A stretch of 64,000 nucleotides of DNA from positions 124,001 through 188,000 of IMG/VR virus record IMGVR_UViG_3300026521_000471. One strand, 5' to 3'. The position numbers and the translations under genes are program-made. The notes below the pieces were generated by a model. The model was not told the DNA's origin. It saw only the letters and a list, made by a program, of their open reading frames with translations, and did not search any database. This document shows positions 4,000 to 63,665 of this stretch, piece by piece (position 1 is the stretch's first letter; each line of letters starts with the position of its first letter).

Positions 4000-4011
4000 T
4001 AGGAAACATTT

Positions 4012-5322: not shown

Positions 5323-5335
5323 TTTAAATATTTTA

Positions 5336-5343
5336 TATAAATA
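5336..5343 (+). promoter_or_regulatory. T4-type late promoter TATAAATA (representative site)
   Basis: The same octamer lies 15-40 nt before starts at 18247, 20575, 24295, 27822, 31078, 39485, 54368, 63638 (+) and 48311, 60517 (-); AATAAATA variants at 10063, 23508, 33329 (+) and 35684, 58051 (-). Confidence 0.7.
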
Positions 5344-5372
5344 ATATTAATCAGAATAAAAAAGGGAATAAT

Positions 5373-6434
5373 ATGAAATTAATAGATGTTATTATGGATA
5401 ACTCATTAGAAATTGATGAAGGTTTTATCTTAGAACTAGAGGAATTGGATTTACTTGAAAATATAGTAAATGAATTAGAATTATTAGAAGCTAGAAATAT
5501 AGCAACTACAAGCAATGAAAATATAGTGTATGTTAAATCACTTAAAGCATTGCGTGAAAAAGCAAGAAAAATCATTAAAGATGCTATGAAAAAAAATCCA
5601 AAAACTAGAGCTGAATTAATAGCAAAAGTAAGATACTTAACAGGTAGAGGTAAAAAAGAACAACGTATTAAAGATGCTGCAAAAGGAATATATAAAGGTG
5701 GTAAACCAGTTGAAGATAGCGTATATAATATTACTAAAGCGGATTTAGAAATCATAAAGAAAAATGAAGCAGAAGGTAAATCTAAACCTAAAACATTATC
5801 TCCTAACCAAATTACTTATAAAGCTAGCCAGACACCAGGTGACTATAAAACATTAACTTTAACTAATCTTTTTGCTATAAAAATTAAAGATAAAGTTTAT
5901 ACAGTTAAATCGGCAGAAGATAAAATAGAAAAATATGCAACTGATGCAGCAAAAGTTGTAGTTGAAGCTAGAAATAAAACTGCAAAAATTTGTAAAGAGT
6001 TTGGGTTAAAAGAACCTTTCATTCCAAAATCAGAGGAAGAAGCTAAAAAATATATCATTGATGTATTGATTAAACCTATGTCTAAAGCTGCAAGAAATGC
6101 TAAAGAAAAAGCTAAAGAAATGTTAAATCGAAAAATGGCTGGTGAATCATTACCAAAAAATGACTATGTAATTAAAATTGATTCTTATAGACATGGTAAA
6201 GTTACAGTTCTTGTTCAACTACATCTTGATAAAGTTGTTGAATCATTAGGTTTAGAAGGTATAAAAGCAAGTGAAGTTCCAGATTCATGGTCAGGCACTA
6301 AAGCTGCATGGGGGAAACAAGTAAAACAGTACAAGGCAGAAATTCAAGATAAGATTGAGTCAATAGCTGGACCAAATGCTACAGTTTCAATCGGTAATGC
6401 TGGTGGTTGGATTACTATTAGATTTACTAAATAA
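5373..6434 (+). CDS. late hypothetical protein, possible internal virion protein with acidic propeptide
   Basis: Late promoter; acidic L/E-rich first 40 aa ending in LLE, then a Lys/Ala-rich basic body. Confidence 0.5.
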   Translation: MKLIDVIMDNSLEIDEGFILELEELDLLENIVNELELLEARNIATTSNENIVYVKSLKALREKARKIIKDAMKKNPKTRAELIAKVRYLTGRGKKEQRIKDAAKGIYKGGKPVEDSVYNITKADLEIIKKNEAEGKSKPKTLSPNQITYKASQTPGDYKTLTLTNLFAIKIKDKVYTVKSAEDKIEKYATDAAKVVVEARNKTAKICKEFGLKEPFIPKSEEEAKKYIIDVLIKPMSKAARNAKEKAKEMLNRKMAGESLPKNDYVIKIDSYRHGKVTVLVQLHLDKVVESLGLEGIKASEVPDSWSGTKAAWGKQVKQYKAEIQDKIESIAGPNATVSIGNAGGWITIRFTK

Positions 6435-6485
6435 TAATACTATAAGGTTGTTTTTTGTATAATTACAATTATACAGGAGACAACC

Positions 6486-7379
6486 ATGACAATAGCATTT
6501 ATTTCGGATATTCATCTTGATTTTTGGATACCTATAAAATTAAATGGAACTAAAGAAGATTTACGATTAGACAACTTTATATCAAACACTTTAAAACCGA
6601 TAAAAGCTGATGTACTCATTATCGGTGGTGACAATTCCCACTATAATCAACAATTTAAAAAACTCCTTATAAAACTAGCAGAATTAAAATTATTTAAAAA
6701 GATAATTATTACTTATGGTAATCATGATATGTATTTAGTTTCAAATAAACAAATACACGATTATAAAATTTCGATCAATAAAATCACAGAAATGAAAAAA
6801 ATATGTACTGATATTGATACTGTTGAATTTTTAGATGGTAATATAATTGAGGTAGATGGAATAAAAATCGGAGGTTGTGCTATGTGGTATGATTATTCAT
6901 ATGCTAAAAAATTCTTTAATATGAATGATTTCCATATGCTACAAAAATGGAAACAGGTTATGAATGACGCCAACTATATTTATGGTACAGATCACTTAGG
7001 GTTAAATGAAGTTAGATCAATGTATTCATATGGAAAAACTAAAATTTATACTTTTGATCCATTGCTATTTTTTGAATCGGAAAAAGATAAACTATTAAAA
7101 ATAATAGATAAGGTAGATATTTTTGTTTCGCATTTTGGTCCAGCTATACCACCCAATTTGGAATCAAAATATATGAATATTGATACAGGTTTTTATTATT
7201 TTGATGGCGAACATTATCTTTGGGGTGAAAAAGCACCTAAATTATGGATTTTTGGACATACTCATACAAAATATGAATGGAAAGTTAATAATACATGGAT
7301 GGTATCAAATCCATTAGGATATAAATCTGAAAATACTGGAACATCTATTGATATAATAGAGTTAGACGACCTTTATTAA
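6486..7379 (+). CDS. calcineurin-like metallophosphoesterase
   Basis: SDIH, GGD, GNHD, SH and FGHTH motifs. Confidence 0.85.
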   Translation: MTIAFISDIHLDFWIPIKLNGTKEDLRLDNFISNTLKPIKADVLIIGGDNSHYNQQFKKLLIKLAELKLFKKIIITYGNHDMYLVSNKQIHDYKISINKITEMKKICTDIDTVEFLDGNIIEVDGIKIGGCAMWYDYSYAKKFFNMNDFHMLQKWKQVMNDANYIYGTDHLGLNEVRSMYSYGKTKIYTFDPLLFFESEKDKLLKIIDKVDIFVSHFGPAIPPNLESKYMNIDTGFYYFDGEHYLWGEKAPKLWIFGHTHTKYEWKVNNTWMVSNPLGYKSENTGTSIDIIELDDLY

Positions 7380-7382
7380 ATA

Positions 7383-7404
7383 TTAAGTTATATTTAGATA
7401 TAAT
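7383..7404 (+). promoter_or_regulatory. host sigma70-type promoter WTAAG-N11-TATAAT (representative site)
   Basis: Identical spacing at 6442, 7383, 11745, 12907, 26739 (TATTAT variant), 30036, 41538, 48320, 51292, 55834 and 58079, each just upstream of a gene start. Confidence 0.75.
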
Positions 7405-7433
7405 TATAATATTAAAATAAAAAGGTATTATAT

Positions 7434-8234
7434 ATGAACGATAAAACTTTCGATGAAGAAATTGGTGAATTTTCAGGATTTAGTGAAGCAGATTATAATT
7501 TAACTGAACCTATGAAATTAATAGCTAAAATGGAGATGAAAGCACTAAATGTTATTTGTGGTGAAAATAATGTTGGGAAAAGCCTAACAAATAAACTTCT
7601 CTGGGCTAGTACATTTTTTATGAATTTAAAAATTACTCAAAGTTTTAATTCATTACCTAAAGAACAAATGTCTGATGAAGAAATATTAGAATTAATATTA
7701 AATAATACATTTGATGATCAAAGTTTTGAAGGTACTATCAATTATTCATCAAGAGATGAAATAGTAAAGGTGGCTTTTTATAAATTAGAATATAGATTAG
7801 AAAATGGAAAAGTATGCGATCTTGTTATTGATTTTCCTAATAAAGCTAAGCCTATGGGTCCTATTATTTACCTTTCAAAAGAAGCAAGAGATTTTTCTAA
7901 TATTGAAAAATATTTAAAGATTAAAAAATTATTAAATATACACGAAATAGAATCTTGGGACAGTATTACTGCTTTATCTGACTTTTTCAAAATCTATGAT
8001 ATTTTAGCTATAGAATCACTTTTACAAAAGTTTGATAATGCTAGTGAATTTATCACTCTTATAAATCAAATGCCAGGTGGTAATGAATTACTAGATGATG
8101 ATTTAGTCGATATAAAATTAGATCATGAAAATTCTGAATTATATTATATTGATAAAAATAAGAATCAGAAACGTTTAAGTACATTAGGTGCTGGAACACA
8201 ATCTATAATATTAATGCTTCTTTCCGCAGTATAA
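7434..8234 (+). CDS. ABC/AAA_15-type ATPase fragment
   Basis: Walker A GENNVGKS; ends shortly after the signature-like LGAGTQS, with no Walker B. Confidence 0.55.
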   Translation: MNDKTFDEEIGEFSGFSEADYNLTEPMKLIAKMEMKALNVICGENNVGKSLTNKLLWASTFFMNLKITQSFNSLPKEQMSDEEILELILNNTFDDQSFEGTINYSSRDEIVKVAFYKLEYRLENGKVCDLVIDFPNKAKPMGPIIYLSKEARDFSNIEKYLKIKKLLNIHEIESWDSITALSDFFKIYDILAIESLLQKFDNASEFITLINQMPGGNELLDDDLVDIKLDHENSELYYIDKNKNQKRLSTLGAGTQSIILMLLSAV

Positions 8235-8280
8235 AAATTTATTTAGCCTTTTTGTATAATAATTATAAAAAGGCTTTATT

Positions 8281-8634
8281 ATGTTTTATATTTTATACTC
8301 TAACAAAACAATAAATAAATCTCCTGAAATATCCTATGCTAATGGCACTACTCTACCCTTTAAGGAAGGATATTTTTTATTTGATGACAGCGATAAATCT
8401 ATAAATTTTTGGATTAATGAATCATCTAATTATATCGAATTTGAAGGTAACAGATTTAAAATTGATAAAAAATTAAAATTCAAAAATAAAAATCATGCTA
8501 CAATAATCCTTAATTCTTTAAAATTAGCCGAATTGAAAAAAAATGGTGGTGACTTCTTCTTCCCGAATACGTTTAAAAATATCAAAAATACCTTTGAACA
8601 ACTTATAAGTACCTACCCCGAATATTCCATTTAA
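8281..8634 (+). CDS. hypothetical protein (C-terminal YPEYSI)
   Basis: ORF with RBS and promoter. Confidence 0.6.
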   Translation: MFYILYSNKTINKSPEISYANGTTLPFKEGYFLFDDSDKSINFWINESSNYIEFEGNRFKIDKKLKFKNKNHATIILNSLKLAELKKNGGDFFFPNTFKNIKNTFEQLISTYPEYSI

Positions 8635-8674
8635 AAAATTGTAAAATAAGTATAATATATCACAAGGAGTAAAA

Positions 8675-10048
8675 GTGAGTGAAATTTTTAATGTACCAGA
8701 AATAATAGAAAATATAAGTGGTGAAAAAGTAAGTTCTTATCTTGAAGCAGAGCATAGAAGTTTTGCAATTTATACATTGCAGCAAAGAGCAATACCTTTC
8801 TTTAATGGGATGAAGCCCGTTCAACAAAGATGTCTTTGGCAATTAAGAGGAACTAGTAAATATGAAAAAGTCGCAAAACTAACCGGACAAGTTATGAGTA
8901 TTCACCCACACGGCGATGCTTCAATTGCAGATTCAATAAACCAAATGGCCGGACCATATTGTAACAATATTTCATTTTTTGATGGTCATGGTGCTTTTGG
9001 AACAAGAATTAATCCAACAGCATTTGGTAGTCCAAGATATGTATCAGCAAAATTTAGTTCATTTGCAAAAGAAGTGATCTTTAAAGATTGGGAAATTGTA
9101 GAATTACAACCAACATACGATGAAACTGATATGGAACCAACATTACTTTTGCCATTAATCCCACTTTTATTATTAAATGGTATTCAAGGTATTGCTACAG
9201 GTTATTCTACAACAATTTTACCTAGAGACCCTAAAGATGTAATTGATAGACAAATAAAAGTTTTAAAAGGACAAAAGATTGATAATCCTTTACCATACTC
9301 TAAACCTATTGATAACTGGGCTATCCGACATGAAGATAATCCTAACAAATATACATTCTTAGGTGAATGTGAGATCATTGATACGAGTAGTGCAAAAATC
9401 ACTAAATTGCCATTTGGTATGACTCATGCTAAGGTTGTTGAATCATTGGCGAAAATGGTTGATAAAGGGCAAATTGTTGATTATACAGACAAGTCTAAGA
9501 CTGATATTGATATTACAGTAAACTTTAAACGAGCAGCTCTCAAAAATAAAAGTGGGGAATTTGCTGCAAGAAAATTAAAACTTTCCGCAGGTATGACTGA
9601 AAGAATAATTGTCTTGGATTCAGAAGAATCTAAAGCAGTCGTAGAATATGATGATGCTGCACAATTTATTAAGGATTATACAGAATGGAGATTAAGTTTT
9701 TTTCCAAGACGATATGAACGATTTATACAATTAAATCTAGCAGAAATCAGTAGATTAAATGATATAGTTTTGGCAATCGATAATAATTTAGGTGGTCAAG
9801 CTAAAAATATTAAAAATAAAGCAGATTTAATTACATTTATTGAGGGTATTGGAGTTATCGATATAGAATATATCGCATCTTTACCAGTTTATAGATTTAC
9901 AGAAGAAGAATATGATAAAGCTAAAGCAAAAATTGCCGAATTAGAAAAACAAAATATGGAATATAATAACATTATTGATGATGTAGATCTCCAAAAAAAT
10001 ATTTTTATAAATGAACTAAAAGAAGTCAAAAAGAAATTTGCCAAATAA
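8675..10048 (+). CDS. type II DNA topoisomerase, GyrA/ParC-like subunit (T4 gp52-like)
   Basis: GMKPVQQR, HPHGDASI, SPRY active-site Tyr, NGIQGIATGY; no C-terminal pinwheel. Confidence 0.92.
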   Translation: MSEIFNVPEIIENISGEKVSSYLEAEHRSFAIYTLQQRAIPFFNGMKPVQQRCLWQLRGTSKYEKVAKLTGQVMSIHPHGDASIADSINQMAGPYCNNISFFDGHGAFGTRINPTAFGSPRYVSAKFSSFAKEVIFKDWEIVELQPTYDETDMEPTLLLPLIPLLLLNGIQGIATGYSTTILPRDPKDVIDRQIKVLKGQKIDNPLPYSKPIDNWAIRHEDNPNKYTFLGECEIIDTSSAKITKLPFGMTHAKVVESLAKMVDKGQIVDYTDKSKTDIDITVNFKRAALKNKSGEFAARKLKLSAGMTERIIVLDSEESKAVVEYDDAAQFIKDYTEWRLSFFPRRYERFIQLNLAEISRLNDIVLAIDNNLGGQAKNIKNKADLITFIEGIGVIDIEYIASLPVYRFTEEEYDKAKAKIAELEKQNMEYNNIIDDVDLQKNIFINELKEVKKKFAK

Positions 10049-10096
10049 TATTTATTAGTAGTAATAAATAAAGTAAAAATATCAGCAGGTTTATAA

Positions 10097-11284
10097 ATGG
10101 CAATTACACAGATAGCAGACTCAAATAATAATATAGGTACATTATATGAAGAGGTATTAAAACCTCTTTATGGTGATGATGCAGATAGAATTTTATCTAA
10201 TACAATATTAATCAGAAGTTTTTTTTTAAATATTATTAAAAAATTTGTTGATTCTGAAAATATGATTAATATTCGAGAATTTTCAACGGATCCTATTATG
10301 TATTACTTAACAAGTGGCGAGTACAACTATGATATTATTAAAGATTATATTACCGACTCAATAGTAATTCCCAATACTACTGATCTAAGTATGTTAAATA
10401 ATCAAATTAATAATTTGGAATATAAATTACCATTAGTAGTCGAAGCTCTATCATACAATAATGTTACTGAAGAATTATGGGATCAATATTTGGATGATAT
10501 TTTTTTATACTACGCTGATGATGCAAATAATCCAGTTCATAAAATTATAATTGAAGATGTCATATCGGTATTCAAGTTATGGAATGATACATCAAATACA
10601 AACCAAAAAGAAATGCTAAAAGCATACAATGCAAATAATAATATTTCGTATGATACTAATACTTTTTGGTTTGAACCATTTAATTCCATATCTAGTAAAT
10701 ATTGGGAAAAGTTTTCATTCGCTTTAACTATTAATGATTATGATATTTATGATTCTAATAATGATACGTATCTAGATATTATAGCGAATGAGTATTTCAC
10801 CAATGGATATTTTGATGAAATAATAATAAAAATAAACTACTACTATTGGTTTGATAATTTTCAAAAAATTACTGATTGGGTTGAAAAAAATCTAAAATCT
10901 GCTCTGGTTTCATATAGATTCAATACAATATTTTCAATTTCTAATAGATATGCAACTACTGAAGAAGCCGAAAAATATAATGACATCGTACGTCTAAATA
11001 CTGAAGATGAGGAATTAACTATGTATAAAGAACGATTACCAATACTCCTTGATACTATTCTTAAAAACCCTCAAACATATGGCTTTGAACTTATTGGTGG
11101 ATATTTTGGTAAAGAAGGATATAGTAATAATGCTGTTGATCAATCAATTTATGATAATGAGTTCAAAGATTATCTATGTGATATAGCTAATAGCTCACCA
11201 TTTAGCAGTTTAAATGATATGTATGTTAGAGTATTTAATGATCCAAATAAAAAAATTTTTATTTGTATTGATAATACCCCTTAA
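10097..11284 (+). CDS. acidic hypothetical protein, possibly structural
   Basis: 395-aa ORF after AATAAATA. Confidence 0.55.
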   Translation: MAITQIADSNNNIGTLYEEVLKPLYGDDADRILSNTILIRSFFLNIIKKFVDSENMINIREFSTDPIMYYLTSGEYNYDIIKDYITDSIVIPNTTDLSMLNNQINNLEYKLPLVVEALSYNNVTEELWDQYLDDIFLYYADDANNPVHKIIIEDVISVFKLWNDTSNTNQKEMLKAYNANNNISYDTNTFWFEPFNSISSKYWEKFSFALTINDYDIYDSNNDTYLDIIANEYFTNGYFDEIIIKINYYYWFDNFQKITDWVEKNLKSALVSYRFNTIFSISNRYATTEEAEKYNDIVRLNTEDEELTMYKERLPILLDTILKNPQTYGFELIGGYFGKEGYSNNAVDQSIYDNEFKDYLCDIANSSPFSSLNDMYVRVFNDPNKKIFICIDNTP

Positions 11285-17925: not shown

Positions 17926-18228
17926 TTATTCTTTTGAAAAAATTCGTTCTGCAAATTGAGTAACAGGTCCTCTAAGAACTTTTTGTAATTCTATACCAAA
18001 TAGATTTACTTCTTCATGTTCTTCTTTTGTAGCATTTAAAAGGGTGGTTAAACCATTAGTATATCTTGTAATATACTGATTATCAATCTGTCTATTTGAA
18101 CCTAATACAATAACTTTACAAGAAGAATCAATACGACTTAATACTAGTTGTAATGTAGAATTACTCATATTTTGAGCTTCATCAATAATTACAATAGCAT
18201 CTGAAAGTGTTCGACCTCTCATACTACC
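17926..18228 (-). pseudogene. orphaned duplicate of the phoH 3' end
   Basis: (GS)MRGRTLSDAIVIIDEAQN...IFSKE closely matches the last ~100 aa of 19010-20437; similarity stops at the Gly codon near 18228. Confidence 0.85.
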
Positions 18229-18279
18229 AAAACTTTTTAATAATTGTATAAATAATATAAAAGGATTAAGGACAAATTC

Positions 18280-19017
18280 ATGATATATACCATATATAAA
18301 ATCACAAATAAACTAAATAATAAAATATATATAGGAGCCCACACAACAGAGGACATTTCCGACAATTATATGGGTTCGGGAGCAATATTAAAAAAAGCTA
18401 TTGAAAAATATGGGTTAGATAATTTTTATAAAGAGGTGTTATATACGTTTACAACCGAAGAAGAAATGTATTTAAAAGAAGCAGAGTTAGTTAATGAAGA
18501 ATTTATTCAACGAGATGATACTTATAATTTAAAGGTCGGTGGATATGGAGGATGGTCTTATATTAACGAAAATAAATTAAATAATACAGAAAAAAATAGA
18601 TTATCAAGATTAAAAAATTTGGAAAAAGCAAATGAAGCAAATAAAAAATTAGTTGCTGAAGGGAAGCATAGAAAAGGCTTTAAGATTAGTGCGGAAACAA
18701 AATTGAAAATGTCGTTAAATAAGAATCGGTCATTTCCTGGCGAAAAAAACCCTCAATATGGGAAAAAATGCGTTAATAAAAATGGTAAAAATTTGATGAT
18801 ATTAAAAGAGGAAGTAAATGACTATATTAAAAAAGGTTGGGAGTTAGGTCAAATACAAAATAAACCAGATACCAAAGGAAATAAAAATGCGTCCTTTGGT
18901 AAAAGCTGGTACACAAATGGTGAAGAAAGTAAATTATTAAGCCAAGAAGAGTCAATTAAATACATTTCTTTAGGTTGGACAAAGGGTAGAACATTGAAAA
19001 AAAGTAAGACTAGCTAG
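18280..19017 (+). mobile_element. free-standing GIY-YIG (Seg-like) homing endonuclease
   Basis: TIYKITN..KIYIGAH, YMGSG, YNLKVGG; NUMOD-like C-terminal repeats; own TATAAATA promoter at 18247. Confidence 0.85.
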
Positions 19018-19024
19018 TCTTACT
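19003..19024. repeat. perfect 22-bp palindrome carrying the stop codons of both convergent genes
   Basis: AGTAAGACTAGCTAGTCTTACT; both proteins end S-K-T-S-stop. Confidence 0.9.
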
Positions 19025-20437
19025 AAAAATTTTTTCCGCAAATGTTGTTATAGGTCCTCTTAATACTTTCTGTAATTCTATACCGAATAAACTTACTTCT
19101 TCATGTTCTTCTTTTGTAGCATTTAAAAGTGCAGTCAAACCATTCGTATATTTGGTAATATATTGATTATCGATTTGTCTATTTGAACCCAATACAACAA
19201 CTTTACAAGAAGAATCAACCCTAGTCAATGTTAGTTGTAGTGTACTAGTACTCATATTTTGAGCTTCATCAATAATTACAATAGCATTAGATAAAGTTCT
19301 TCCGCGAAGTGCACCAGTCCACATAGTTTCAACTTGATAACGTTCTACTAACTCTTGGACTTTTTCAGATATTCGTTCTTCAGTTACAGTTTCTCCCTTA
19401 CCAGGCTTATTTTCTTTTGATTTTTTTAACATTTGACCCGCAATATAAGCAAGAGTATCAAATAATGGGAAATTATATATCTCAAATTTTGCTTCATTCG
19501 TTGAAAGATAACCTACATCTTCTCCTTTAGCTAACGATTCAACTGAGTTTCTAATATAGACTATACGTTGATATTCTTTACACTTAATCAATTCCATTGC
19601 TGCACTAATAGCTAAAAGGGTTTTACCAGAACCAGCTTTAGCTTCAGCTACAACGATATTATAATGATTATTAAGTAATGCATTACTAAAAAATAATTGT
19701 TCGGCATTCATAGGATTTACATTTTGTTTACGTAATTCTTTTTCATCTAAAAATTGTATTTTATTATTAATTATATAAGCAAGTATTTTTTGCCCGTCTT
19801 TATTAAAAATATAATTAAAATTATTTGGTTTGTGTTCGGAGTTAAAATCTAAAATATTATCTCCCTCTCGAACTTCCTGTCCATTTAAATTAATTTCTTT
19901 AATAAAATCTAAAGAAATCTCTTTATTTCCTAAATTTAATGGTTCTGTCTCCAGTCCTAAACTTATAGCTCTTGTTCTAGCCATCACATCTAATGATATA
20001 AATTTAATATGTTCATAATTTATATCCTCTGTATTATGTATTAAATCCAATGTAATTTCTAAGATCTTTCTATCATTTCTTATACTATTACTCGTATTAT
20101 CAGAATCAGCTTTATATACTTCCTTGGATATAATATGAATAACAGTATCATCTACTTTAGTTTCGATTAAAACTATATCAAATGATTTATTGTTGTCGCT
20201 ATTTGCTTTTATAACTCTTTTATCTTTAATTTCCGCATCAAATAACATTCTACCGAACTCTCTGGCTTGGAAATTTATTTCATCCCAACCACTTTTTTTA
20301 CTATCTATTTCATCTAATACTGTTTCTGGTAAAATAATAAGATTTTTACCATTATCCGATAAAGTGAATAGATTTTTTGCGTCGTCAAGTATTATATTTG
20401 TATCTAAACAAAATACTTTTTCAAATTTTTTAGTCAT
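19010..20437 (-). CDS. phoH: PIN-PhoH ATPase
   Basis: N-terminal PIN (LDTNIILD, VLDEID, NDRKIL); AKAGSGKT; RGRTL; IIDEAQN. Confidence 0.9.
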   Translation of the reverse strand: MTKKFEKVFCLDTNIILDDAKNLFTLSDNGKNLIILPETVLDEIDSKKSGWDEINFQAREFGRMLFDAEIKDKRVIKANSDNNKSFDIVLIETKVDDTVIHIISKEVYKADSDNTSNSIRNDRKILEITLDLIHNTEDINYEHIKFISLDVMARTRAISLGLETEPLNLGNKEISLDFIKEINLNGQEVREGDNILDFNSEHKPNNFNYIFNKDGQKILAYIINNKIQFLDEKELRKQNVNPMNAEQLFFSNALLNNHYNIVVAEAKAGSGKTLLAISAAMELIKCKEYQRIVYIRNSVESLAKGEDVGYLSTNEAKFEIYNFPLFDTLAYIAGQMLKKSKENKPGKGETVTEERISEKVQELVERYQVETMWTGALRGRTLSNAIVIIDEAQNMSTSTLQLTLTRVDSSCKVVVLGSNRQIDNQYITKYTNGLTALLNATKEEHEEVSLFGIELQKVLRGPITTFAEKIFSKTS

Positions 20438-24541: not shown

Positions 24542-25141
24542 TCAATTATAAGGTTCTATATTAAATTCTTCAAATAGAACCTTAAGCCCAACAGTTAATT
24601 TTCCCGACTTTGGAAAGTCAGGAAATTTTTTCTTTCGTCCACTCAATCCATATTCTTTTTTTAATTTATTATAATTTCGTTTAGATACCTTTTGAGCTTT
24701 TGGTTCTTCTGATGGATGTATATAAAAATTTCCTTCTTCATCTTGATATGCACCAGCTTCTAAATAATCTGCTAAATTTCGTAAAAAATCTGGCAAACTG
24801 ATCGGGTGGTTAGTTTCATCTGCTCCGAAATATCTTTTCCAGTTATTTGTGATTTTTCCTTCCATTGCATTTGCCCTAAACTCTAAAGCATTTCTAATCG
24901 TACCTTTTTGTTCAGAACATTCTTCATTTTTTAATTTATGAATATGATCTAATACCATTTTATCGAGTTCAACCTCAATTCCTAATAATGGACATATTTT
25001 ATTATTTTCTAACCATAATTTTTCTTTTAATTCTTTTATATTTTTCTGTTTTAATTGTATTAATTGTTTCATAGTTTTATTTATATGATAAAAATTGTAA
25101 AATTGATATAAAAAAAATAAGGTTTTGTAATGGATGAGCAA
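24542..25141 (-). CDS. recombination endonuclease VII-like nuclease (true start probably 25072)
   Basis: CPLLG..VLDHIH..GTIRNAL..ANAMEGKI His-Me finger pattern. Confidence 0.7.
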   Translation of the reverse strand: MLIHYKTLFFLYQFYNFYHINKTMKQLIQLKQKNIKELKEKLWLENNKICPLLGIEVELDKMVLDHIHKLKNEECSEQKGTIRNALEFRANAMEGKITNNWKRYFGADETNHPISLPDFLRNLADYLEAGAYQDEEGNFYIHPSEEPKAQKVSKRNYNKLKKEYGLSGRKKKFPDFPKSGKLTVGLKVLFEEFNIEPYN

Positions 25142-26551
25142 ATAGATGATACAGAATATGAAGACGCTTTAGCCGAATTAGAGGCAGAATCATCTTCAAA
25201 AAAGAAAAAGAAGAAAAAAACAGTTGAACATTCAGAAGGCAAACTATTAGATATTGAAGATAAAGAACGAATTTTACTTGCTCAACTTATTAATAACCCA
25301 GAATTATTTGTTAAAGGTATAACTTTTCTAGATAAAGATTTCTTTGAATCAAAAATTAATAAATTAATTGTGGAATTTATGATTGATTATTATGATTTAT
25401 ATAAAAGTATCCCGCCTGAAGATGCTATACTATTAGAATTAAATTTAGATAACGTACATGATGATTGGTTAGATATAAATAAACCTTGGCCAACAGAGTA
25501 TCTTGAAGACTATTTAAATGCGTTTATAAAAAATATGAGTATGAAAGGTGCTATCGAAGATAGTATTGAATTACTAGAAGAAGAAGATTATGGAACTATT
25601 GAGAAGAAGATTAAAGATGCTGTAAACGTTGATATTGATACAAAGTTAGGTGTAACCATAGATACTGATAAAGATAATTTTCGTGACTTATTTAAAATGC
25701 TAACATCAACTGAAGCTACAATTCCAACTGGATGGTGGAACGTAGATGATAAATTAGATGGTGGTGTAACAATACCAAGTTTAAATTATTTATTAGCTAA
25801 ATCTGGTGGTGGTAAATCAATAGGTTTAATAAATTTAGCATGGAATTATATTCAGATGAAAAGGGATGTTATTTATATTTCTCTAGAACTAAAGGAAGAG
25901 AAAATCATGAAGAGGTATATAACCCACTCAACTAAAATTCCGACCCATCAAATTGAAAAGTCTGAGATGGAAATTTATAACCATCTAAAGAAATGTGATA
26001 ATAAGGGGTATGGTCGATTTACTGTTCATTTCTATCAACCCAATACACTAAGTGCAATGAAGTTGGAATTATTTGTAAGAAATTATTTACAAAAATATAA
26101 TACAGTACCTATTATTATTCTAGATTATGCAGGTTTAATGACACCAAATGGTAAAAATTGGCAAGGTATGTTTGAAAAAGATAAATATGTTTCTGAAGAA
26201 TTAAGAGCTGTGGCAACGTTATTTGATACGATCGTTTGGACAGCAGACCAATATAATAGATGTATATCATTTGGTGAACAGGTAATAACACCGAATGGTA
26301 AAAAAAATATTGAAGATGTTGAAATAGGGGATAAAGTTCTTGGGGGCAATAATAGTTATCGTACTGTAACAGCGATAACGGAGCCGGAAGAACAAGAAGT
26401 ATATAAAATTACTTTAAAAAGTGGAAAAACTATCAAAGTATCAGGAAGACATATCTTCCCAAAAGTTTTAGAAGATGGGAAATTAGTAGAAGATTGCATA
26501 TTATCTTCATTAAGTATAGGTGACAAGTTGGTGGTCTCCGATAAAATATGA
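25130..26551 (+). CDS. T4 gp41/DnaB-like replicative helicase, N-terminal part, ending in split-intein IntN
   Basis: AKSGGGKS Walker A, YISLEL, IILDYAGLM, WTADQYNR, then CISFGEQV intein block A. Confidence 0.9.
   Translation: MDEQIDDTEYEDALAELEAESSSKKKKKKKTVEHSEGKLLDIEDKERILLAQLINNPELFVKGITFLDKDFFESKINKLIVEFMIDYYDLYKSIPPEDAILLELNLDNVHDDWLDINKPWPTEYLEDYLNAFIKNMSMKGAIEDSIELLEEEDYGTIEKKIKDAVNVDIDTKLGVTIDTDKDNFRDLFKMLTSTEATIPTGWWNVDDKLDGGVTIPSLNYLLAKSGGGKSIGLINLAWNYIQMKRDVIYISLELKEEKIMKRYITHSTKIPTHQIEKSEMEIYNHLKKCDNKGYGRFTVHFYQPNTLSAMKLELFVRNYLQKYNTVPIIILDYAGLMTPNGKNWQGMFEKDKYVSEELRAVATLFDTIVWTADQYNRCISFGEQVITPNGKKNIEDVEIGDKVLGGNNSYRTVTAITEPEEQEVYKITLKSGKTIKVSGRHIFPKVLEDGKLVEDCILSSLSIGDKLVVSDKI
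26261..26548 (+). mobile_element. split intein N-fragment (96 aa)
   Basis: Cys1 block A; IEDVEIGDKV; block B VSGRHIF; ends LSIGDKLVV with no block F or G. Confidence 0.88.
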
Positions 26552-26736
26552 AAAATGGAACATTCAGATTAAAAACTAGATTATTTATCTTTCCAAAATC
26601 ATTCTTTGGTATTGAGAAGTGGGGCATTCAAAAAGTATATCAACGTTTTTGGAAAGACTATGTTAATTATGAAGAGCCAGACTTTGCATGTTGGGAAGAT
26701 TACTGCTGGGATAATCAAATAGAAAGATTAATTTGA
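26548..26736 (+). CDS. small hypothetical protein
   Basis: ATGA-coupled to the helicase gene; no intein or helicase motifs. Confidence 0.5.
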   Translation: MKNGTFRLKTRLFIFPKSFFGIEKWGIQKVYQRFWKDYVNYEEPDFACWEDYCWDNQIERLI

Positions 26737-26787
26737 TTTTAAGGTTAATTTAGATATTATTTTTAAATATAATTCAAGGAGAATAAT

Positions 26788-27312
26788 ATGCTAGTTATTA
26801 AAGCTATACAATTTGCAGCAGAAAAACATAAAGGTCAAGAACGAAGATGTTCTGGATTACCCTATGTAACACATCCAATTATTGTATCTCAACTAATTGC
26901 AAAATATAAAAATGGCTCTAAAAAGCTAGATGAATTACAATGTGCTGGATTACTCCATGATGTTTTAGAAGATACAGATTGTACATATTCTGAGTTAGAG
27001 CGGGAATTTGGTCCATTAGTAGCTTCAATAGTCGTTGAATTAACGTCAGATCCTGTAGCAATTAAGCAGCTAGGTAAGAATGAATATTTAAAGCAAAAAA
27101 TGATTAAAATGTCTAAATATGCTTTTATCATAAAATTAATAGATCGACTTTCAAATGTTTTAGACAAACCTGGAGAGTCATATGTTAAAAAGACGTTAAA
27201 TATGATGGAATTTCTTAAAAAAAATCGTCCTGATATAACTGAACGGCAATTAAGAATTATAAATGAGATAGAAAATGTGTGTCTGGAGTTTCAAAAAAAT
27301 GAGTGTAAGTAA
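26788..27312 (+). CDS. HD-domain (p)ppGpp hydrolase-like protein (small alarmone hydrolase/Mesh1 type)
   Basis: AAEKHKGQER, PYVTHP, LLHDVLEDT, IKLIDRLSN; no synthetase domain. Confidence 0.85.
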   Translation: MLVIKAIQFAAEKHKGQERRCSGLPYVTHPIIVSQLIAKYKNGSKKLDELQCAGLLHDVLEDTDCTYSELEREFGPLVASIVVELTSDPVAIKQLGKNEYLKQKMIKMSKYAFIIKLIDRLSNVLDKPGESYVKKTLNMMEFLKKNRPDITERQLRIINEIENVCLEFQKNECK

Positions 27313-27817
27313 ATTTGAATATCAACTATTAGAAGATGAATTGAAAAAAACTAAACGTGAGTTAAACCAATTAAAAAATATGCAAGAATTTGAATATCTA
27401 GTAGGTCAAGAATTTAAAATGCCTATGAAATTTGGTTTTGATATTACAGAGTCAAATATTAAATCACTAAAAAGTGATTTAGGATTCATTTTATGGGCAC
27501 TTATAAAAAATAACCATTTAACTCCAGAAGATTTTGATGATGAAGTAATGTCAGCTGTTGAAAAAATAAATCAAATACGTCCAAAAAATTACGTAGAATT
27601 TAAAGCAGCAATATCGTTTAGTAGATTACGTCAATCTAATAAATATGGTAGTACCTATATTGAAGAATTTCAAACACAAATTTTAAATGATGTTTATTGG
27701 TTAGGAATCTGGTTTTATATTAAAAATCCACAAGAATTTTTATTTGAATATAATAATAAAATTATGCAATTAAACACTAAAAATTTTTCATTTGTAAACC
27801 CCCAATTATTTGTTTAA
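27275..27817 (+). CDS. hypothetical protein (C-terminal NPQLFV; start probably 27299)
   Basis: ORF; GGAG RBS precedes ATG at 27299. Confidence 0.55.
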   Translation: MCVWSFKKMSVSKFEYQLLEDELKKTKRELNQLKNMQEFEYLVGQEFKMPMKFGFDITESNIKSLKSDLGFILWALIKNNHLTPEDFDDEVMSAVEKINQIRPKNYVEFKAAISFSRLRQSNKYGSTYIEEFQTQILNDVYWLGIWFYIKNPQEFLFEYNNKIMQLNTKNFSFVNPQLFV

Positions 27818-27850
27818 TAGTTATAAATATTTTAAAAAGTAGGTTTAAAT

Positions 27851-30028
27851 ATGGATGTTAAATATTTTTTAGAAAAATTAGGAAGTTTATTAATTATTGG
27901 ATTTGTTATTATATCCACGTCTATTATACTTTATTTTAGCTATAAGTCAAATAATAAAGATATTATGGATGACATTGACAATAATTTACGCCACGAATTG
28001 ATTATTTTATCTATTGCGTCCGAAGATTTGTTTAACAAATATAACAATATACTTACAATGTTAGGGGATAATATTTTATCCAAAGATAATAAACAAAAAT
28101 ATTTAGATACAGCATTAAAATTAGAAACTGATGCAGTGGGCTATGGTTTTATATCACCCGAAGGTAATATATTAATTAACTCCTCAAACGTCGATATAAA
28201 GAAGATCTCTAATTTTATCTCCAACCCCAAAACTAAAGGAACATTTCTTAAAACTATAAAATCAAAATCATCAATTTTAGGACGGTCATATTTATTTAAA
28301 CCGACAAATCAATTAATTGTACCAATAAGAAAAAGTATTAGGAAAAATTCAAAAGTATATGGTGTACTAGCGGTAGGCATTAATATAAATAAGTCGTTTT
28401 CTAATTTATTTACAAATAAAATACATAACAATTCTATAATTTTATTAATCAAAAATAACTCAGCTAGAATTCAATATTCAAACGATAATACGTTCGAAAT
28501 AGATTCTATTTTAAAAACCGATAATCCTCGACTTTTTAAAACTATAAATCAAATGACATTGACTAATACATCATTAAATAATATAAAATATAGGGTAGGT
28601 GTAAAATTTATTGAAAAATACAATCTATGGCTTGTTATAGGCTTTCCTTCAAAAGTTATATCTTCATTAAAAAATGAATGGTTAATAAATGCTGTATCTA
28701 TATGGTTTGTTTTTAACGTAAGTTTTATTATAATGATATTAATTATTAATAAGATTAATAACGATCGGAAAAATGAATTGGAATATATTTCTATACATGA
28801 TCCATTAACACATATTGGAAATAGATATTATTTAAATAAGAAAATAGTCGATTACGAAGAATATAGTATGCTATTTTTAGATCTAGACAATTTTAAATTT
28901 ATAAATGATAACTTCGGACATAATTACGGAGATAAATTTTTAGTTTCTATAGCAACAGAACTTAAAAAAAATATTTCTGCTGATGATTTATTAATACGTT
29001 TTAGTGGTGATGAATTTATAATTATTACTAGGGAAATGAATAAAGATAAATTATTAAGTTTTGCTAAAAGATTATTGAATATGACTAATGAGAAATTTAA
29101 ATATGAGCATAAGACAACCATGAGTATTGGTATTGCACAACGAGAGGGATCTGAAGATCTACATAATGTAAAATATAAAGCAGATTTAGCTTTATATATA
29201 GCAAAAGAAGAACTAAACACCATTATATTCTATGATAAAAATATAGAAGAATCATTTAAAGAAGAACATTTAATAGAAAATGAACTATTAGAAGGTATTA
29301 TTTTAAAAGAAATTTTCATGGTTTATCAACCACAATTAAATACTAAAAATAAAATCGTAGGAATAGAAGCATTAGTTCGATGGAATAATTCAAAGTTAGG
29401 TTATATAAATCCCGAGACATTTATCAAAATCGCTGAAAAAAATGGAAATATGATAATTTTAGGTGATCATATATTAAATCAAGTTTTTAGTGATATTAAT
29501 ACATTTAAAAATATAATTCCAGATAATTTTAATATATCTATTAATATTTCTGTTAAACAATTTATGGAAGATAACTTTGTACAAAAATTAAAGGATAAAT
29601 TATACCAATATAAAGTCAATCCAAATAATATCACATTAGAAGTAACAGAAAATATATTTATTTTAGATTTAAACTATATGGAACAAATAATAAATGATTT
29701 GCATACATTGGGTGTAAAAATTTCTATTGATGATTTTGGAACAGGATACTCTTCTTTATCTTCTGTTAAACATCTGACTATTGATGAAATAAAGATTGAT
29801 AAATCTTTTGTAGATAATATTGAAAACGACCATAGTTCCAAAAGTATGGCTGAAGTAATTATTAAAATGAGTAAAATTTTTAATACCATTATTTTAGCTG
29901 AAGGTATAGAAAATATCAAACAAAAAGAAATTCTTGATAACTTAGGGTGCGATTTCTACCAAGGATATTACTTTTCAAAACCTTTACCATTAACAAAATT
30001 AAAAGAGTTCATAAAAAATAATATTTAA
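27851..30028 (+). CDS. membrane Cache-GGDEF-EAL c-di-GMP enzyme
   Basis: Two TM helices flank a Cache-like domain; HDPLT, DLDNFKFINDNFGH, RFSGDEF; GIEALVRW, EVTE, DDFGTGYSS, EIKID, AEGIE, QGYY. Confidence 0.92.
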   Translation: MDVKYFLEKLGSLLIIGFVIISTSIILYFSYKSNNKDIMDDIDNNLRHELIILSIASEDLFNKYNNILTMLGDNILSKDNKQKYLDTALKLETDAVGYGFISPEGNILINSSNVDIKKISNFISNPKTKGTFLKTIKSKSSILGRSYLFKPTNQLIVPIRKSIRKNSKVYGVLAVGININKSFSNLFTNKIHNNSIILLIKNNSARIQYSNDNTFEIDSILKTDNPRLFKTINQMTLTNTSLNNIKYRVGVKFIEKYNLWLVIGFPSKVISSLKNEWLINAVSIWFVFNVSFIIMILIINKINNDRKNELEYISIHDPLTHIGNRYYLNKKIVDYEEYSMLFLDLDNFKFINDNFGHNYGDKFLVSIATELKKNISADDLLIRFSGDEFIIITREMNKDKLLSFAKRLLNMTNEKFKYEHKTTMSIGIAQREGSEDLHNVKYKADLALYIAKEELNTIIFYDKNIEESFKEEHLIENELLEGIILKEIFMVYQPQLNTKNKIVGIEALVRWNNSKLGYINPETFIKIAEKNGNMIILGDHILNQVFSDINTFKNIIPDNFNISINISVKQFMEDNFVQKLKDKLYQYKVNPNNITLEVTENIFILDLNYMEQIINDLHTLGVKISIDDFGTGYSSLSSVKHLTIDEIKIDKSFVDNIENDHSSKSMAEVIIKMSKIFNTIILAEGIENIKQKEILDNLGCDFYQGYYFSKPLPLTKLKEFIKNNI

Positions 30029-30085
30029 GTTAATTATAAGTTTATTTTGTATATAATAAAACCTAATAAAAATTTAGGAGTTAGA

Positions 30086-31009
30086 ATGGAAAAACTTATG
30101 AAGACCATTGGATGGTCAGTAGTACTAGGTATTGGCCTTGTTATAATCTTAGGATTTATGGCAATCACAAAAACTGGATTTGCAATTGTAAATGACGGTG
30201 AAAGAGGCGTTATGAAAACAGGTACAAAATATGATATGACGGAAGTACAACCCGGTTATCATTTCTTTATACCAATCTATCAGAGTATTGAGATAGACAC
30301 GATTCGTCCAAAACTTATTAATTATTCAAGAACAGAAGCAAACAAAGAAGATTCTGAATTACTTATTTTTGAACCGGTTCTTAAAGGTTTAGATAAAAAA
30401 GGTATTCCTATTGAGTTAGCTTTAAGTATTGAAGTAAAACCCGTAGCAGATCAACTAGCTGAAATGTATAAGAATGATGGTGATTTTGAAAATGCATTCT
30501 ATAAAAAAGTTAAGCAGGTAAATAGAGAGGCCGTACAAGCTACAATTTCTAGATTTAGTGTTGATACTATTATGGATAAAAGACCTGAAGTTGAAAAGTA
30601 TCTTACAGAAAAACTTAATGAAAGTTACTCTAAAAACCCATATTTTAAATTGGTAAATATCAATCTTAAAGATATTATAGTGCCAAAAGAGATCGCTGAT
30701 AAGATGTTAGAAGTTCAATCGGCTAAACAAGATGCTCTCAAATCACAAGAGTTAATTAAGAAAGCACAAAATGAAGCTAAAGCGAGAGAAGCTAAAGCTC
30801 AAGGTGAAGCTAATGCAGTTAAAATTGCGGCACAAGGTAGAGCTGATGCTATTTTAGTCGAGGCTAATGCCCAATCAAAAGCTAATAAATTACTTAGTGC
30901 ATCATTAACTGATAAGGTTATTAAAATTCAAACCGTTGAAAAGTGGAATGGTTCTGTACCTACTTATGTTGGTGGAGAAAATTCACAATTTATTATGGAT
31001 ATGAAATAA
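30086..31009 (+). CDS. SPFH/band-7 (prohibitin-like) membrane protein
   Basis: TM helix, GERGV, PGYHFFIP, AEA-type coiled coil, EKWNG..P; AGGAG RBS before ATG at 30086. Confidence 0.85.
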   Translation: MEKLMKTIGWSVVLGIGLVIILGFMAITKTGFAIVNDGERGVMKTGTKYDMTEVQPGYHFFIPIYQSIEIDTIRPKLINYSRTEANKEDSELLIFEPVLKGLDKKGIPIELALSIEVKPVADQLAEMYKNDGDFENAFYKKVKQVNREAVQATISRFSVDTIMDKRPEVEKYLTEKLNESYSKNPYFKLVNINLKDIIVPKEIADKMLEVQSAKQDALKSQELIKKAQNEAKAREAKAQGEANAVKIAAQGRADAILVEANAQSKANKLLSASLTDKVIKIQTVEKWNGSVPTYVGGENSQFIMDMK

Positions 31010-31023
31010 TCCTTACAACTAAA

Positions 31024-31046
31024 TATCTAGGTTTTTAACCTAGATA
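31024..31046 (+). terminator. terminator hairpin
   Basis: TATCTAGGTT-TTT-AACCTAGATA. Confidence 0.65.
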
Positions 31047-31099
31047 CCTCTCTTTATACTAATCCCTAATAAACCCATATAAATAAATTAAAAATATGG

Positions 31100-31303
31100 A
31101 TGTATAGAATGAAAAAACAATTTACATACCAAAATAATATTTTAGCATTTCCTTGCGGTATTGAAGTTGAAATCAACAAACAGAAACTCAAAGACATTTA
31201 TAAAATCTTTAAATTGGAAAATGAATTTGAAGAAATGATTAAAATAGGTTATAGTGAAATACCCCAATGGGCTGCTTCTCAAATTAGACAATATCTAACA
31301 TAA
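31100..31303 (+). CDS. small late hypothetical protein
   Basis: TATAAATA at 31078. Confidence 0.45.
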   Translation: MYRMKKQFTYQNNILAFPCGIEVEINKQKLKDIYKIFKLENEFEEMIKIGYSEIPQWAASQIRQYLT

Positions 31304-31341: not shown

Positions 31342-32457
31342 TTGGCTTTACCAAAAAAGAAAAAAATTTTTTCTATCCCACTTAACCCGTACACTTCAAA
31401 AGAAGACTTTGAAAACATCTTTGTTCCATTCTTAAAAAAGAATGCCGATTGGATTTATGATGTATATTTTACAAGTAGAATCCCACCATTTATGCAAGAT
31501 GCAATGGGAGCAAATTTTGATAATAATTCATTAGTACAAATTTTTAATAATGCTATGGCATTAGAACAAGCTACAGGAGTTAGAGTTTCAGCAACTTTCA
31601 ATAATGTTAATGTTCCACCTACTGCAGAGAATTTAGAAATATTTTGTTCAAATCTACAATTTTTATATGATGCAGGACTCAGAAGCATGACACAACCACA
31701 CAATCATTGGATGATGACCGGTGTATTTAAAGAAAAATTTCCCGAATTACAAGTAAAGAATACAGTTTTAAAAAGAGTTGCTACAGCACAAGACTTTTGG
31801 ACTGCATGTGAAGCAGGTTATGATTATATTAATATTGATAGAATTCTTTTGCGTGATGAAGAAATGCTAAAGAGAATTAAAAAAGCCCAACTTAAATTTG
31901 AAAAAGAAACTGGAAAATATGTACCTATCGCATTACTTGCTAATGAAGGGTGTAGAGGTAAATGTCCGGTAATGAATGAACATTATACAATTAATAATGC
32001 TAGTGGTAGCAAACAACCAGGAACAGACAAACCATATTTTTATCAAAAAATTAGTGAAGTTAGTTGCCCTAAATGGAGATTAGAAGATCCTGCTTATTCA
32101 TTCAAAATAGGCAACATACCACCATATCGAGAAGATTTTGAAAGACTTTTAGAGTATGTAGATGTAATAAAAACTCATGGTAGAGAAGGGTTTGGACTAC
32201 TAAATGATACTATCAAATTCATTGAGAGTTATATTAATGGTGATGAAGAATTACATGACATTTCAATTAGAGGTCAAATTGAAGATTTAAAAGTCGACCA
32301 AAATAAATTGCAATTATGGCGAAAACATATTAGAACGTGTCAATTTGAATGTTGGGATTGTCATCTTTGTGATGAACTAGTAGCATCAGCTCAAAAAAAG
32401 AAGGATAAAGATTTAGGTACATCAATAGATGATTTAATAAATTCATATGAAGGATAA
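31342..32457 (+). CDS. peptidase U32-family (Fe-S hydroxylase-like) protein
   Basis: LLANEGCRGKCP..EH, SC, DVIKTHGR, C-terminal CxxxCxxCxxC. Confidence 0.65.
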   Translation: MALPKKKKIFSIPLNPYTSKEDFENIFVPFLKKNADWIYDVYFTSRIPPFMQDAMGANFDNNSLVQIFNNAMALEQATGVRVSATFNNVNVPPTAENLEIFCSNLQFLYDAGLRSMTQPHNHWMMTGVFKEKFPELQVKNTVLKRVATAQDFWTACEAGYDYINIDRILLRDEEMLKRIKKAQLKFEKETGKYVPIALLANEGCRGKCPVMNEHYTINNASGSKQPGTDKPYFYQKISEVSCPKWRLEDPAYSFKIGNIPPYREDFERLLEYVDVIKTHGREGFGLLNDTIKFIESYINGDEELHDISIRGQIEDLKVDQNKLQLWRKHIRTCQFECWDCHLCDELVASAQKKKDKDLGTSIDDLINSYEG

Positions 32458-37398: not shown

Positions 37399-38003
37399 AA
37401 CTCGAAACATTAATTTCAACAGTTAAAGATAAAATTATATACAAAATGGATTTCTATCAATCTATTATTATTATTAATGTTCCAAAGCAAAAAATTTTAA
37501 ATAAAGGTACTATAATTTTTTTGCTAAATAAACAATCAGGTGTATTATCTGGAGAATGGTTTAATAATAAAAATAGCAATATAAAATTATTTGGAATTCT
37601 AAATAATAAATTTATAAAATCCATATTAAAAAATAAAAAATTAAGATTATTAAATAGTATCTTACCTGATGTATTAGTCAATAAAGATTTTATAATAGAA
37701 TATAAATTTCTTTCACCAGAAGAGAAAAAATTATTGAAAGAGTATATAATATCTTCTGAAGAACAAATACACAACAAGTATATGACATTTGATAATAAAT
37801 TTAATAAAGTCTCTTGGGAACAAAGCATTAAACTATCTTCTAACTATTTTGTAGAATGGTGTAAAGATAGCTCAAATATACAAGATTGTATTAAAAATGC
37901 AATCAACATTGCTAATAAAAATTTAGATATAAATTTAAAACGCAGAGCAATTTTAAATAAATGTTTTATAGATATTAGAAAATGGAGAGAAAAAAATGGC
38001 TAA
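37395..38003 (+). CDS. hypothetical protein
   Basis: ATGA-coupled ORF. Confidence 0.55.
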   Translation: MKLETLISTVKDKIIYKMDFYQSIIIINVPKQKILNKGTIIFLLNKQSGVLSGEWFNNKNSNIKLFGILNNKFIKSILKNKKLRLLNSILPDVLVNKDFIIEYKFLSPEEKKLLKEYIISSEEQIHNKYMTFDNKFNKVSWEQSIKLSSNYFVEWCKDSSNIQDCIKNAINIANKNLDINLKRRAILNKCFIDIRKWREKNG

Positions 38004-38544
38004 AAAAAAGAAAAATATACCTATCCATATTACAAAACGTGATTCATCAACATTTGTTTTAAATAAGATTTCGTCTAGTATGTTATATCATGTACAACAA
38101 AAATTCGCATATTTACCACCAGGTTATAAATTTCAACCTAGATTTAGACTTATGGGTATTAAAGGTGTACAAGTTAAGCTAGTACACGCAGATGGTTCAT
38201 TCCCAATGGGATTATTTTCAGAAGTTGTAGAATATTTAACAGAGGTGCAAAAAAAGAAAGTTACTATGAGCAGTGAAGTAATGGAACATTTTTTACCACT
38301 AACTGATTTTTTTGAAGATGGTATAAAAGATGATATATTCTCAGACTATGAATTCGATGGTAATCCTGTAATATTAAGAGATTATCAATTAGGTGCAGTT
38401 GAAGCCGCTTTTGAAAATAGAAACGGCTTATTAAATTTATCTACTGGTGCAGGTAAGTGCTTAGGTGGTGAAACTAAAATACGAGTAAAATTAAGTAGTG
38501 AACTAATTAAAAAATATAAAGTTATTATAAAAGGCGAATTATGA
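37996..38544 (+). CDS. uvsW: UvsW-like helicase, N-terminal half, ending in a 28-aa split-intein IntN
   Basis: PGYKFQPRFR (UvsW N-domain), Q-motif LRDYQ, Walker A STGAGK followed directly by CLGGETKI. Confidence 0.9.
   Translation: MAKKKKNIPIHITKRDSSTFVLNKISSSMLYHVQQKFAYLPPGYKFQPRFRLMGIKGVQVKLVHADGSFPMGLFSEVVEYLTEVQKKKVTMSSEVMEHFLPLTDFFEDGIKDDIFSDYEFDGNPVILRDYQLGAVEAAFENRNGLLNLSTGAGKCLGGETKIRVKLSSELIKKYKVIIKGEL
38458..38541 (+). mobile_element. atypical short split intein N-fragment (28 aa)
   Basis: CLGGETKIRVKLSSELIKKYKVIIKGEL contains block A only. Confidence 0.85.
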
Positions 38545-39520: not shown

Positions 39521-39814
39521 ATGGCAAGAAAGAAAAAGATTCAAGAAGAAGTAGAAGTACCAGTTGTTGAAGTAACTGATGAAGAGATTCAAGAAGAAGT
39601 AGAAGTAGAAGTAGAAGTACCAGTTGTTGAAGTAACTGATGAAGAGATTCAAGAAGAAGTAACTGATGATTTTGATAATATTGCAATTACTGATTATGCT
39701 ATGGTATCAAATGAATTAGCAAAAAAAATACTTGAGAAAAAAGGTAAAAAAGTATTATTTGAAGAGCCAGAAGACGTTCAATCTAGCTTTCATATGAAAC
39801 CATTAAAAAAATAA
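39521..39814 (+). CDS. late acidic repeat protein
   Basis: TATAAATA at 39485; IQEEVEVPVVEVTDEE repeats. Confidence 0.65.
   Translation: MARKKKIQEEVEVPVVEVTDEEIQEEVEVEVEVPVVEVTDEEIQEEVTDDFDNIAITDYAMVSNELAKKILEKKGKKVLFEEPEDVQSSFHMKPLKK
39537..39669 (+). repeat. in-frame tandem repeat (~48-bp unit, about 2.5 copies, with GTAGAA expansion)
   Basis: AGATTCAAGAAGAAGTA occurs three times; CCAGTTGTTGAAGTAACTGATGAAG occurs twice. Confidence 0.85.
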
Positions 39815-63572: not shown

Positions 63573-63665
63573 TTATTATCCTTCTGTTATTATTTTAATA
63601 TTATTTTACATTTTTTCAATAATCTATTCAAAACTACTATAAATACTTTTAAAATAGGAGATAAT

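Follow-up and report, generated by a model that had tools for sequence, protein, structure and literature searches.

When a gene for a replicative helicase runs without interruption into half an intein and then stops, the question arises whether the remainder of the enzyme is encoded elsewhere or has been lost. Such a gene lies at 25130-26551 (+ strand, 473 aa) of the window, by which we mean the whole 64,000-nucleotide stretch analysed here (positions 124,001-188,000 of contig IMGVR_UViG_3300026521_000471, a vent phage contig of 224,467 bp and 27% G+C, on which the same gene occupies 149,130-150,551). Examination of the gene, of its uncultured relatives and of a candidate partner gene (P0134) leads us to propose, with a probability of roughly 0.84, that the two genes encode a split replicative helicase whose halves would be joined by protein trans-splicing at the gp41-8 site, P0134 being the most likely C piece.

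Judged from its sequence, ORF 25130-26551 encodes a DnaB/gp41-type helicase as far as its N-terminal three quarters and continues unbroken into an intein N-fragment (IntN). The helicase portion, or N-extein (25130-26260, residues 1-377), comprises the N-terminal domain, a Walker A motif (SGGGKS) and the core up to ...WTADQYNR. The Pfam DnaB_C profile matches residues 198-377 with 52.8 bits (cut-off 27 bits), and the match covers only positions 2-180 of the 255 in the profile, so the helicase core is cut short. Identity is 28-31% to the helicases of large phages (PA5oct, XaC1) and 41-44% to a set of intact uncultured relatives (P0055-P0059). Directly after QYNR follows Cys378 (TGT at 26261-26263), the first residue of a 96-aa IntN (26261-26548) with blocks A and B; after 95 further residues the gene ends in a TGA (26549-26551) that overlaps the ATG (26548) of a 62-aa ORF. 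The catalytic Cys1 and the block B histidine (block B reads S-G-R-H) are both kept. The preliminary description of this locus, made from the letters alone, had placed the WTADQYNR motif, the cysteine at 26261, the 96-aa IntN and the stop correctly in every detail.

Residues 5-68 of the IntN align with residues 8-70 of the gp41-1 intein (PDB 6QAZ; E 2.8e-9). In an alignment with about 14 split relatives and the contiguous intein of P0073, which occupies the same site, the IntN matches the N part of the P0073 intein and stops where its C part starts. Matches to the Pfam Hint and Intein_splicing profiles stay under their cut-offs, as half a domain would be expected to. Residues 45-70 carry a net charge of +5. 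On these grounds we assign the fragment to a predicted canonical (class 1, Cys1) split intein, one that terminates at the canonical split point and carries no endonuclease domain.

A promoter-like motif, AAAAATTGTAAAAT, lies at 25090-25103 (+ strand), 27 nt before the start codon; it is weak and recognized by consensus only. The same motif, or a near-identical one, precedes the starts at 8675, 31342 and 36373 and those of several minus-strand genes by 25-40 nt. A promoter-like motif of the extended -10 type, AAATTGTAAAAT, is found at the same distance before several start codons, that of the helicase N piece included, at 8634, 25090, 31302 and 36332, and on the minus strand at 63616, 62270 and 60845. 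Directly before the C-piece gene described below AAATTGTAAAAT is absent, and that gene sits 21 nt after a CYTH gene. On its 5′ side the N piece is abutted by a divergent ORF (24542-25141, - strand) with a weak match to Endonuclease VII (E 0.0019, below the cut-off), which could be a free-standing nuclease beside the split gene.

The remainder of the helicase was sought throughout the window. No C half was detected by tblastn with helicase C-termini (XaC1, RsoM2USA, ESh36, P0057, P0073), by tblastn with 121 proteins of the partner family introduced below, or by a profile search of all six frames, and the sole match to a regular expression for blocks F and G followed by HN[SCT] was the C-fragment of a different intein, that of the UvsW-like helicase, near 22049. 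The match to 6QAZ, the alignment with P0073 and the search of all frames together bear out the claim that the window holds an intein N-fragment without its C-fragment. The 36 kb upstream of the window likewise contain no C piece, and show no synteny with the C locus of an 89-kb relative (Ga0486129_000021). The ORF that follows the stop (26548-26736, 62 aa) had been called unrelated, and indeed has no family match.

Two leads within the window were rejected. A gene 2.2 kb from the C piece of the 89-kb relative is homologous to window 31342-32457; on the strength of this synteny, remnants of a C half were looked for at 26.5-31.3 kb, which holds none and is a block of cargo. Window 1185-1403 gives a weak match (E 8e-4) to the N-termini of P0231-like proteins, but is not an intein segment. 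Besides the 62-aa ORF, the variable cargo block (26548-31300) encodes an HD-domain protein, a 180-aa ORF, a dCache-GGDEF-EAL protein and an SPFH/Band 7 protein. Neither a sister phage nor the 89-kb relative has it here: in the former a DUF7487 gene abuts the N piece, and in the latter a dCTP deaminase gene follows the N piece directly.

What the N piece lacks can be read from the intact relatives P0055-P0059, which continue as ...QFNR-[TS]G..EEN[IV]QGG[IL]SK.... A profile of the C-termini of intact relatives, subsequently widened, uncovered a family of proteins of about 190-200 aa that consist of a 37-aa intein C-fragment (IntC) ending ...ILTHN, a serine, and the helicase C-terminus. An exhaustive profile search retrieved 1,087 representatives of this family at E <= 0.001, many of them stand-alone pieces of 130-200 aa that combine an IntC with a helicase C-terminus. 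To this family belongs P0134 (201 aa), whose gene lies at 225,495-226,100 of contig IMGVR_UViG_3300026521_000003 (289,880 bp, 27.6% G+C), from the same vent metagenome as the N contig. It begins with a 37-aa IntC ending ILTHN, followed by Ser+1 and the missing helicase C-terminus. The preliminary description had suggested a search for just such a gene, an IntC ending in HN and fused to the gp41 C-terminus, and had placed it far from the N piece; P0134 answers to both expectations, lying on a second contig that occurs in the same sequencing runs.

The two fragments complement each other. Residues 1-37 of P0134 align with residues 92-128 of the gp41-1 intein, which are exactly its C-fragment (E 9.5e-6), so that the IntN (on 6QAZ 8-70) and this IntC (on 92-128) together make up one intein fold. 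The IntC has a net charge of -6. When the exteins are joined in silico, the resulting 541-aa protein aligns over its full length with intact helicases, without a gap at the junction, and possesses a RecA-type core, a Walker A motif and the full DnaB_C domain; residues 342-463 of the PA5oct helicase align to the C-piece gene at L009 10109-10459. Within the data covered, neither of the two observations that would have refuted the preliminary description, the lack of a partner gene or an intact gp41 elsewhere, was made.

The proposed pathway follows the established class 1 intein mechanism, to which the conserved catalytic residues point. The two polypeptides would be made separately, and the basic strand of the IntN would associate with the acidic IntC to form one HINT domain. 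Cys1 would then undergo an N-S acyl shift, Ser+1 would attack the thioester, the terminal asparagine of the IntC would cyclise, and an O-N shift would yield the 541-aa helicase, with the junction ...QYNR-SAAG.... Splicing of the N piece with P0134 is thus a prediction from the two sequences.

This reading presupposes that the stop codon is genuine. That it is an assembly or sequencing artefact, and that the gene really continues into a contiguous intein, has a negligible probability: the exact N-piece protein occurs on three independently assembled contigs (JGI, ENA ERZ27262639 and Logan SRR7968103), contigs from three DNA runs, each of a different study, read through 26261-26740 without a difference, indel or joint, and relatives end at the same place. 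The identity across assemblies and runs shows that the stop is not an assembly error. A genuine stop might still mark a decaying pseudogene with a truncated intein, replication being left to another helicase or to the host DnaB, a possibility raised by the lack of a C half in the window and by a region 3′ of the stop that differs among relatives. We consider this highly improbable, though less so than an artefact, as the layout, with its stop at the same point, recurs in about 35 uncultured relatives at 50-94% identity, Cys1 and the block B histidine are retained, and a matching partner family has been found. In addition, comparison with the sister phage (94% identical protein) gives a dN/dS of 0.011 for the N-extein and 0.17 for the IntN; the corresponding value for the IntC is 0.044, and those for the exteins of the two halves are 0.011-0.015. 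Both halves of the helicase are under purifying selection, and the low ratios, together with the layout shared by the relatives, indicate a maintained gene and not a wreck. A 354-nt contig from an RNA run lies inside the N piece and hints at transcription, but could be DNA carry-over.

Given a maintained gene, two further alternatives concern the identity and the whereabouts of the partner. P0134 might derive from a co-occurring phage, the true partner being a more diverged IntC-helicase gene in the unread part of the N contig. About 100 kb of that 224-kb contig (the window and the 36 kb upstream) were read directly; for the remainder, absence of a C piece rests on the contig records of the protein searches and on three motif scans of the viral contig collection ([TS]EENIQG, KIQ[AS]ADN and QGGxxKxQxxDN), which require exact motifs and gave 0 matches on the window's own contig. 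Profile searches, however, found no partner-family protein on a contig of 224,467 or 140,120 bp, and no N piece was found on the C contig, so the two contigs are complementary and a P0134 from another phage would have no partner of its own. The N and C loci also occur in identical sets of runs: every one of the eight runs with the N locus also contains the C locus (five studies, of vent, epibiont and biofilm samples), with N/C word shares of 1.00/1.00, 1.00/1.00, 0.86/0.77, 0.84/0.86, 0.55/0.32, 0.16/0.17, 0.13/0.22 and 0.08/0.19. Exact copies of P0134 were recovered from ENA ERZ27262639, ENA ERZ27262685 and Logan SRR33939667, in each case with genes of the window, and the N and C pieces diverge to a similar degree from those of the 89-kb relative (52% and 60%). 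The sister phage shows the same co-occurrence, its N piece P0001 and C piece P0136 both being present in JGI 3300026484 and in Logan SRR7968107. A different partner is accordingly unlikely, although of all the alternatives it is the one to which we give most weight. It is a good deal less probable again that P0134 is the partner but that the halves reside on separate molecules (one of about 222 kb, the other of about 290 kb or more), as a two-part genome or a dependent partner element; if this were so, trans-splicing would make replication depend on the presence of both molecules in the same cell. In both metagenomes the halves do fall on different contigs, even though contigs there reach 222-347 kb (P0001 and P0136 of the sister phage, too, lie on two contigs), and the JGI, ENA and sister-phage assemblies place the ends of the N contig within 0.1-4 kb of one another. 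Coinciding ends would fit a separate molecule, but are most simply explained by a repeat-bounded segment of a larger genome, with assemblies breaking at the repeats. The 89-kb relative, moreover, carries both halves on a single contig (P0034, N, and P0166, C; same strand, 51.5 kb apart), and multipartite tailed phages are not known.

We therefore favour a single genome with unlinked halves. The neighbours of P0034 and P0166 have homologues on both the N and the C contig, among them RNase HII next to a ligase, and the homologue of window 31342-32457 near the C piece. Tetranucleotide usage is compatible with common origin, though not decisive (r 0.83-0.88 between the N and C contigs, 0.87-0.92 within the contig). 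We infer that both contigs belong to one genome, probably of more than 500 kb; if they abut, the two genes would be at least about 138 kb apart and the genome would exceed 514 kb. The vent phage is probably very large. Its gene content includes two aminoacyl-tRNA synthetases, a Cpn60 chaperonin, NAPRTase, radical SAM enzymes and two GGDEF proteins, and a PHROGs scan of the large ORFs of the window for structural genes, as a guide to whether the contig might exist by itself, returned only genes of replication and nucleotide metabolism. Two other features of the window may be recorded here. The PhoH locus (17926-20437) looks like the footprint of a homing endonuclease: a full PIN-PhoH gene (19010-20437, - strand) stands beside a GIY-YIG/NUMOD3 endonuclease gene (18280-19017, + strand) and is accompanied by a 98-aa duplicate of the PhoH C-terminus (17926-18222, - strand) with 87% protein and 86% DNA identity to the full copy. 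At 39537-39660, inside ORF 39521-39814, lies a triple tandem repeat whose unit, about 48-60 nt long, contains AGATTCAAGAAGAAGTA.

The gp41-type helicase is not the only one to be divided in this phage. As had been proposed, a second helicase is split by a differently built intein, and in this case both halves lie in the window. The N piece of the UvsW-like helicase (37996-38544, + strand) ends GAGK|C with a 28-aa IntN (Cys codon at 38458), and its C piece (22463-21054, - strand) starts with a 140-aa IntC ending HHN|T (Thr codon at 22043). These halves are 15.5 kb apart on opposite strands, and the split, placed at the P-loop, is atypical; natural atypical splits such as AceL-TerL have been described as rare. 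The gp41 and UvsW inteins of the phage are about 27% identical. Cross-reaction between them seems unlikely on architecture alone, since the 28-aa IntN with the 37-aa IntC would miss the core of the fold, and the 96-aa IntN with the 140-aa IntC would duplicate it.

Relatives divide their helicases further still, in keeping with the earlier suggestion that gene splitting is dispersed across the genome. In these relatives (JGI Ga0243129_1000046, 2981-11194; proteins P0036-P0054, P0051) the same helicases are broken at additional points. Here gp41 is in three pieces: an N1 piece with a short IntN after GGGK|C, a middle piece composed of a long IntC of about 155 aa, the core and a canonical IntN, and a third piece, none being found within 10 kb. 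The P-loop intein of this gp41 is homologous to the UvsW intein of the window. A second break divides the UvsW core at WDE|C..., where a small zinc-finger ORF separates the halves. That helicases were broken time and again in the vent-phage lineage, by several orthogonal split inteins and as far as the natural three-piece gp41 and UvsW of relatives, is far more likely than a division of the genome between two molecules.

The locus thus offers a conserved, naturally split pair at the gp41-8 site, and its unlinked halves correspond to ‘genomic uncoupling’, the final step of a published model of the origin of split inteins. The rare atypical split in the same phage and the three-piece helicases of its relatives make this lineage a natural source of mutually orthogonal split inteins, which may find use in protein engineering. 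They also raise the question of why large phages tolerate, or exploit, the piecewise assembly of essential replication enzymes. In practical terms, split helicase genes of this kind are easily annotated as truncated or hypothetical.

Among known inteins, the closest counterpart by insertion site is gp41-8, an active split intein that is orthogonal to gp41-1, NrdJ-1 and IMPDH-1 (PMC7090010, PMC11168065) and whose native junction is LNR|SAY (Pinto et al. 2020, supplement). The preliminary description had noted the resemblance of the junction, and the partner completes it: with YNR|C in the N piece and HN|SAA in P0134, the site here reads YNR|SAA, by which the intein can be placed, on sequence grounds, in the gp41-8 class. 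As in gp41-8, the host protein is a phage DnaB/gp41-like helicase, and the intein has Cys1, Ser+1, a terminal HN, a canonical split, a basic IntN interface and an acidic IntC, a polarity described for both gp41-1 and gp41-8 (PMC2677866). The arrangement of the genes differs. In gp41-8 a primase gene lies upstream, and in this and other fractured genes a free-standing homing endonuclease gene separates two adjacent halves (Dassa et al. 2009, PMC2677866), whereas here neither an endonuclease nor a C half follows the N piece, and genes for HD, GGDEF-EAL and SPFH proteins come after the stop. The classical layout is seen in Shigella phage ESh36 (T4-like, ON528746.1, 1492-4374), where an N half with its IntN (...DIAE|C), a 333-aa ORF and a C half with its IntC (...TKN|S) follow one another; the deposit labels them, in turn, no more than ‘DNA primase/helicase’, ‘hypothetical protein’ and once more ‘DNA primase/helicase’. 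The gp41-1 intein (PDB 6QAZ, 6RIZ) is the closest solved structure and has the same split point, but is inserted further downstream in gp41 (...DIAE|C, as in ESh36) and belongs to a fractured-gene locus.

Contiguous mini-inteins of the P0073 type (561 aa) share the DnaB site (QVNR|C...THN|S) and have homologous N and C blocks; unlike the pair described here, they form one polypeptide and splice in cis. In the cultured-phage collection we found no close relative and no phage with this split, the matches being confined to intact helicases from large phages, with identities of about 30% (N piece) and 42-46% (C-extein). Because no cultured phage in the searched collection has the split, we file the pair under the known class with an unlinked arrangement, and regard it as a probable new natural example of a known mechanism, with its halves unlinked. 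Genomic uncoupling, step IV of the model of Dassa et al., was illustrated in their paper only by cyanobacterial DnaE and the Nanoarchaeum polymerase (PMC2677866). As in cyanobacterial DnaE and Nanoarchaeum PolB, an essential replication protein is encoded in halves at unlinked loci and joined by trans-splicing, which is predicted in the present case; those proteins are cellular polymerases, whereas the protein divided here is a phage helicase, whose two loci probably belong to one genome.
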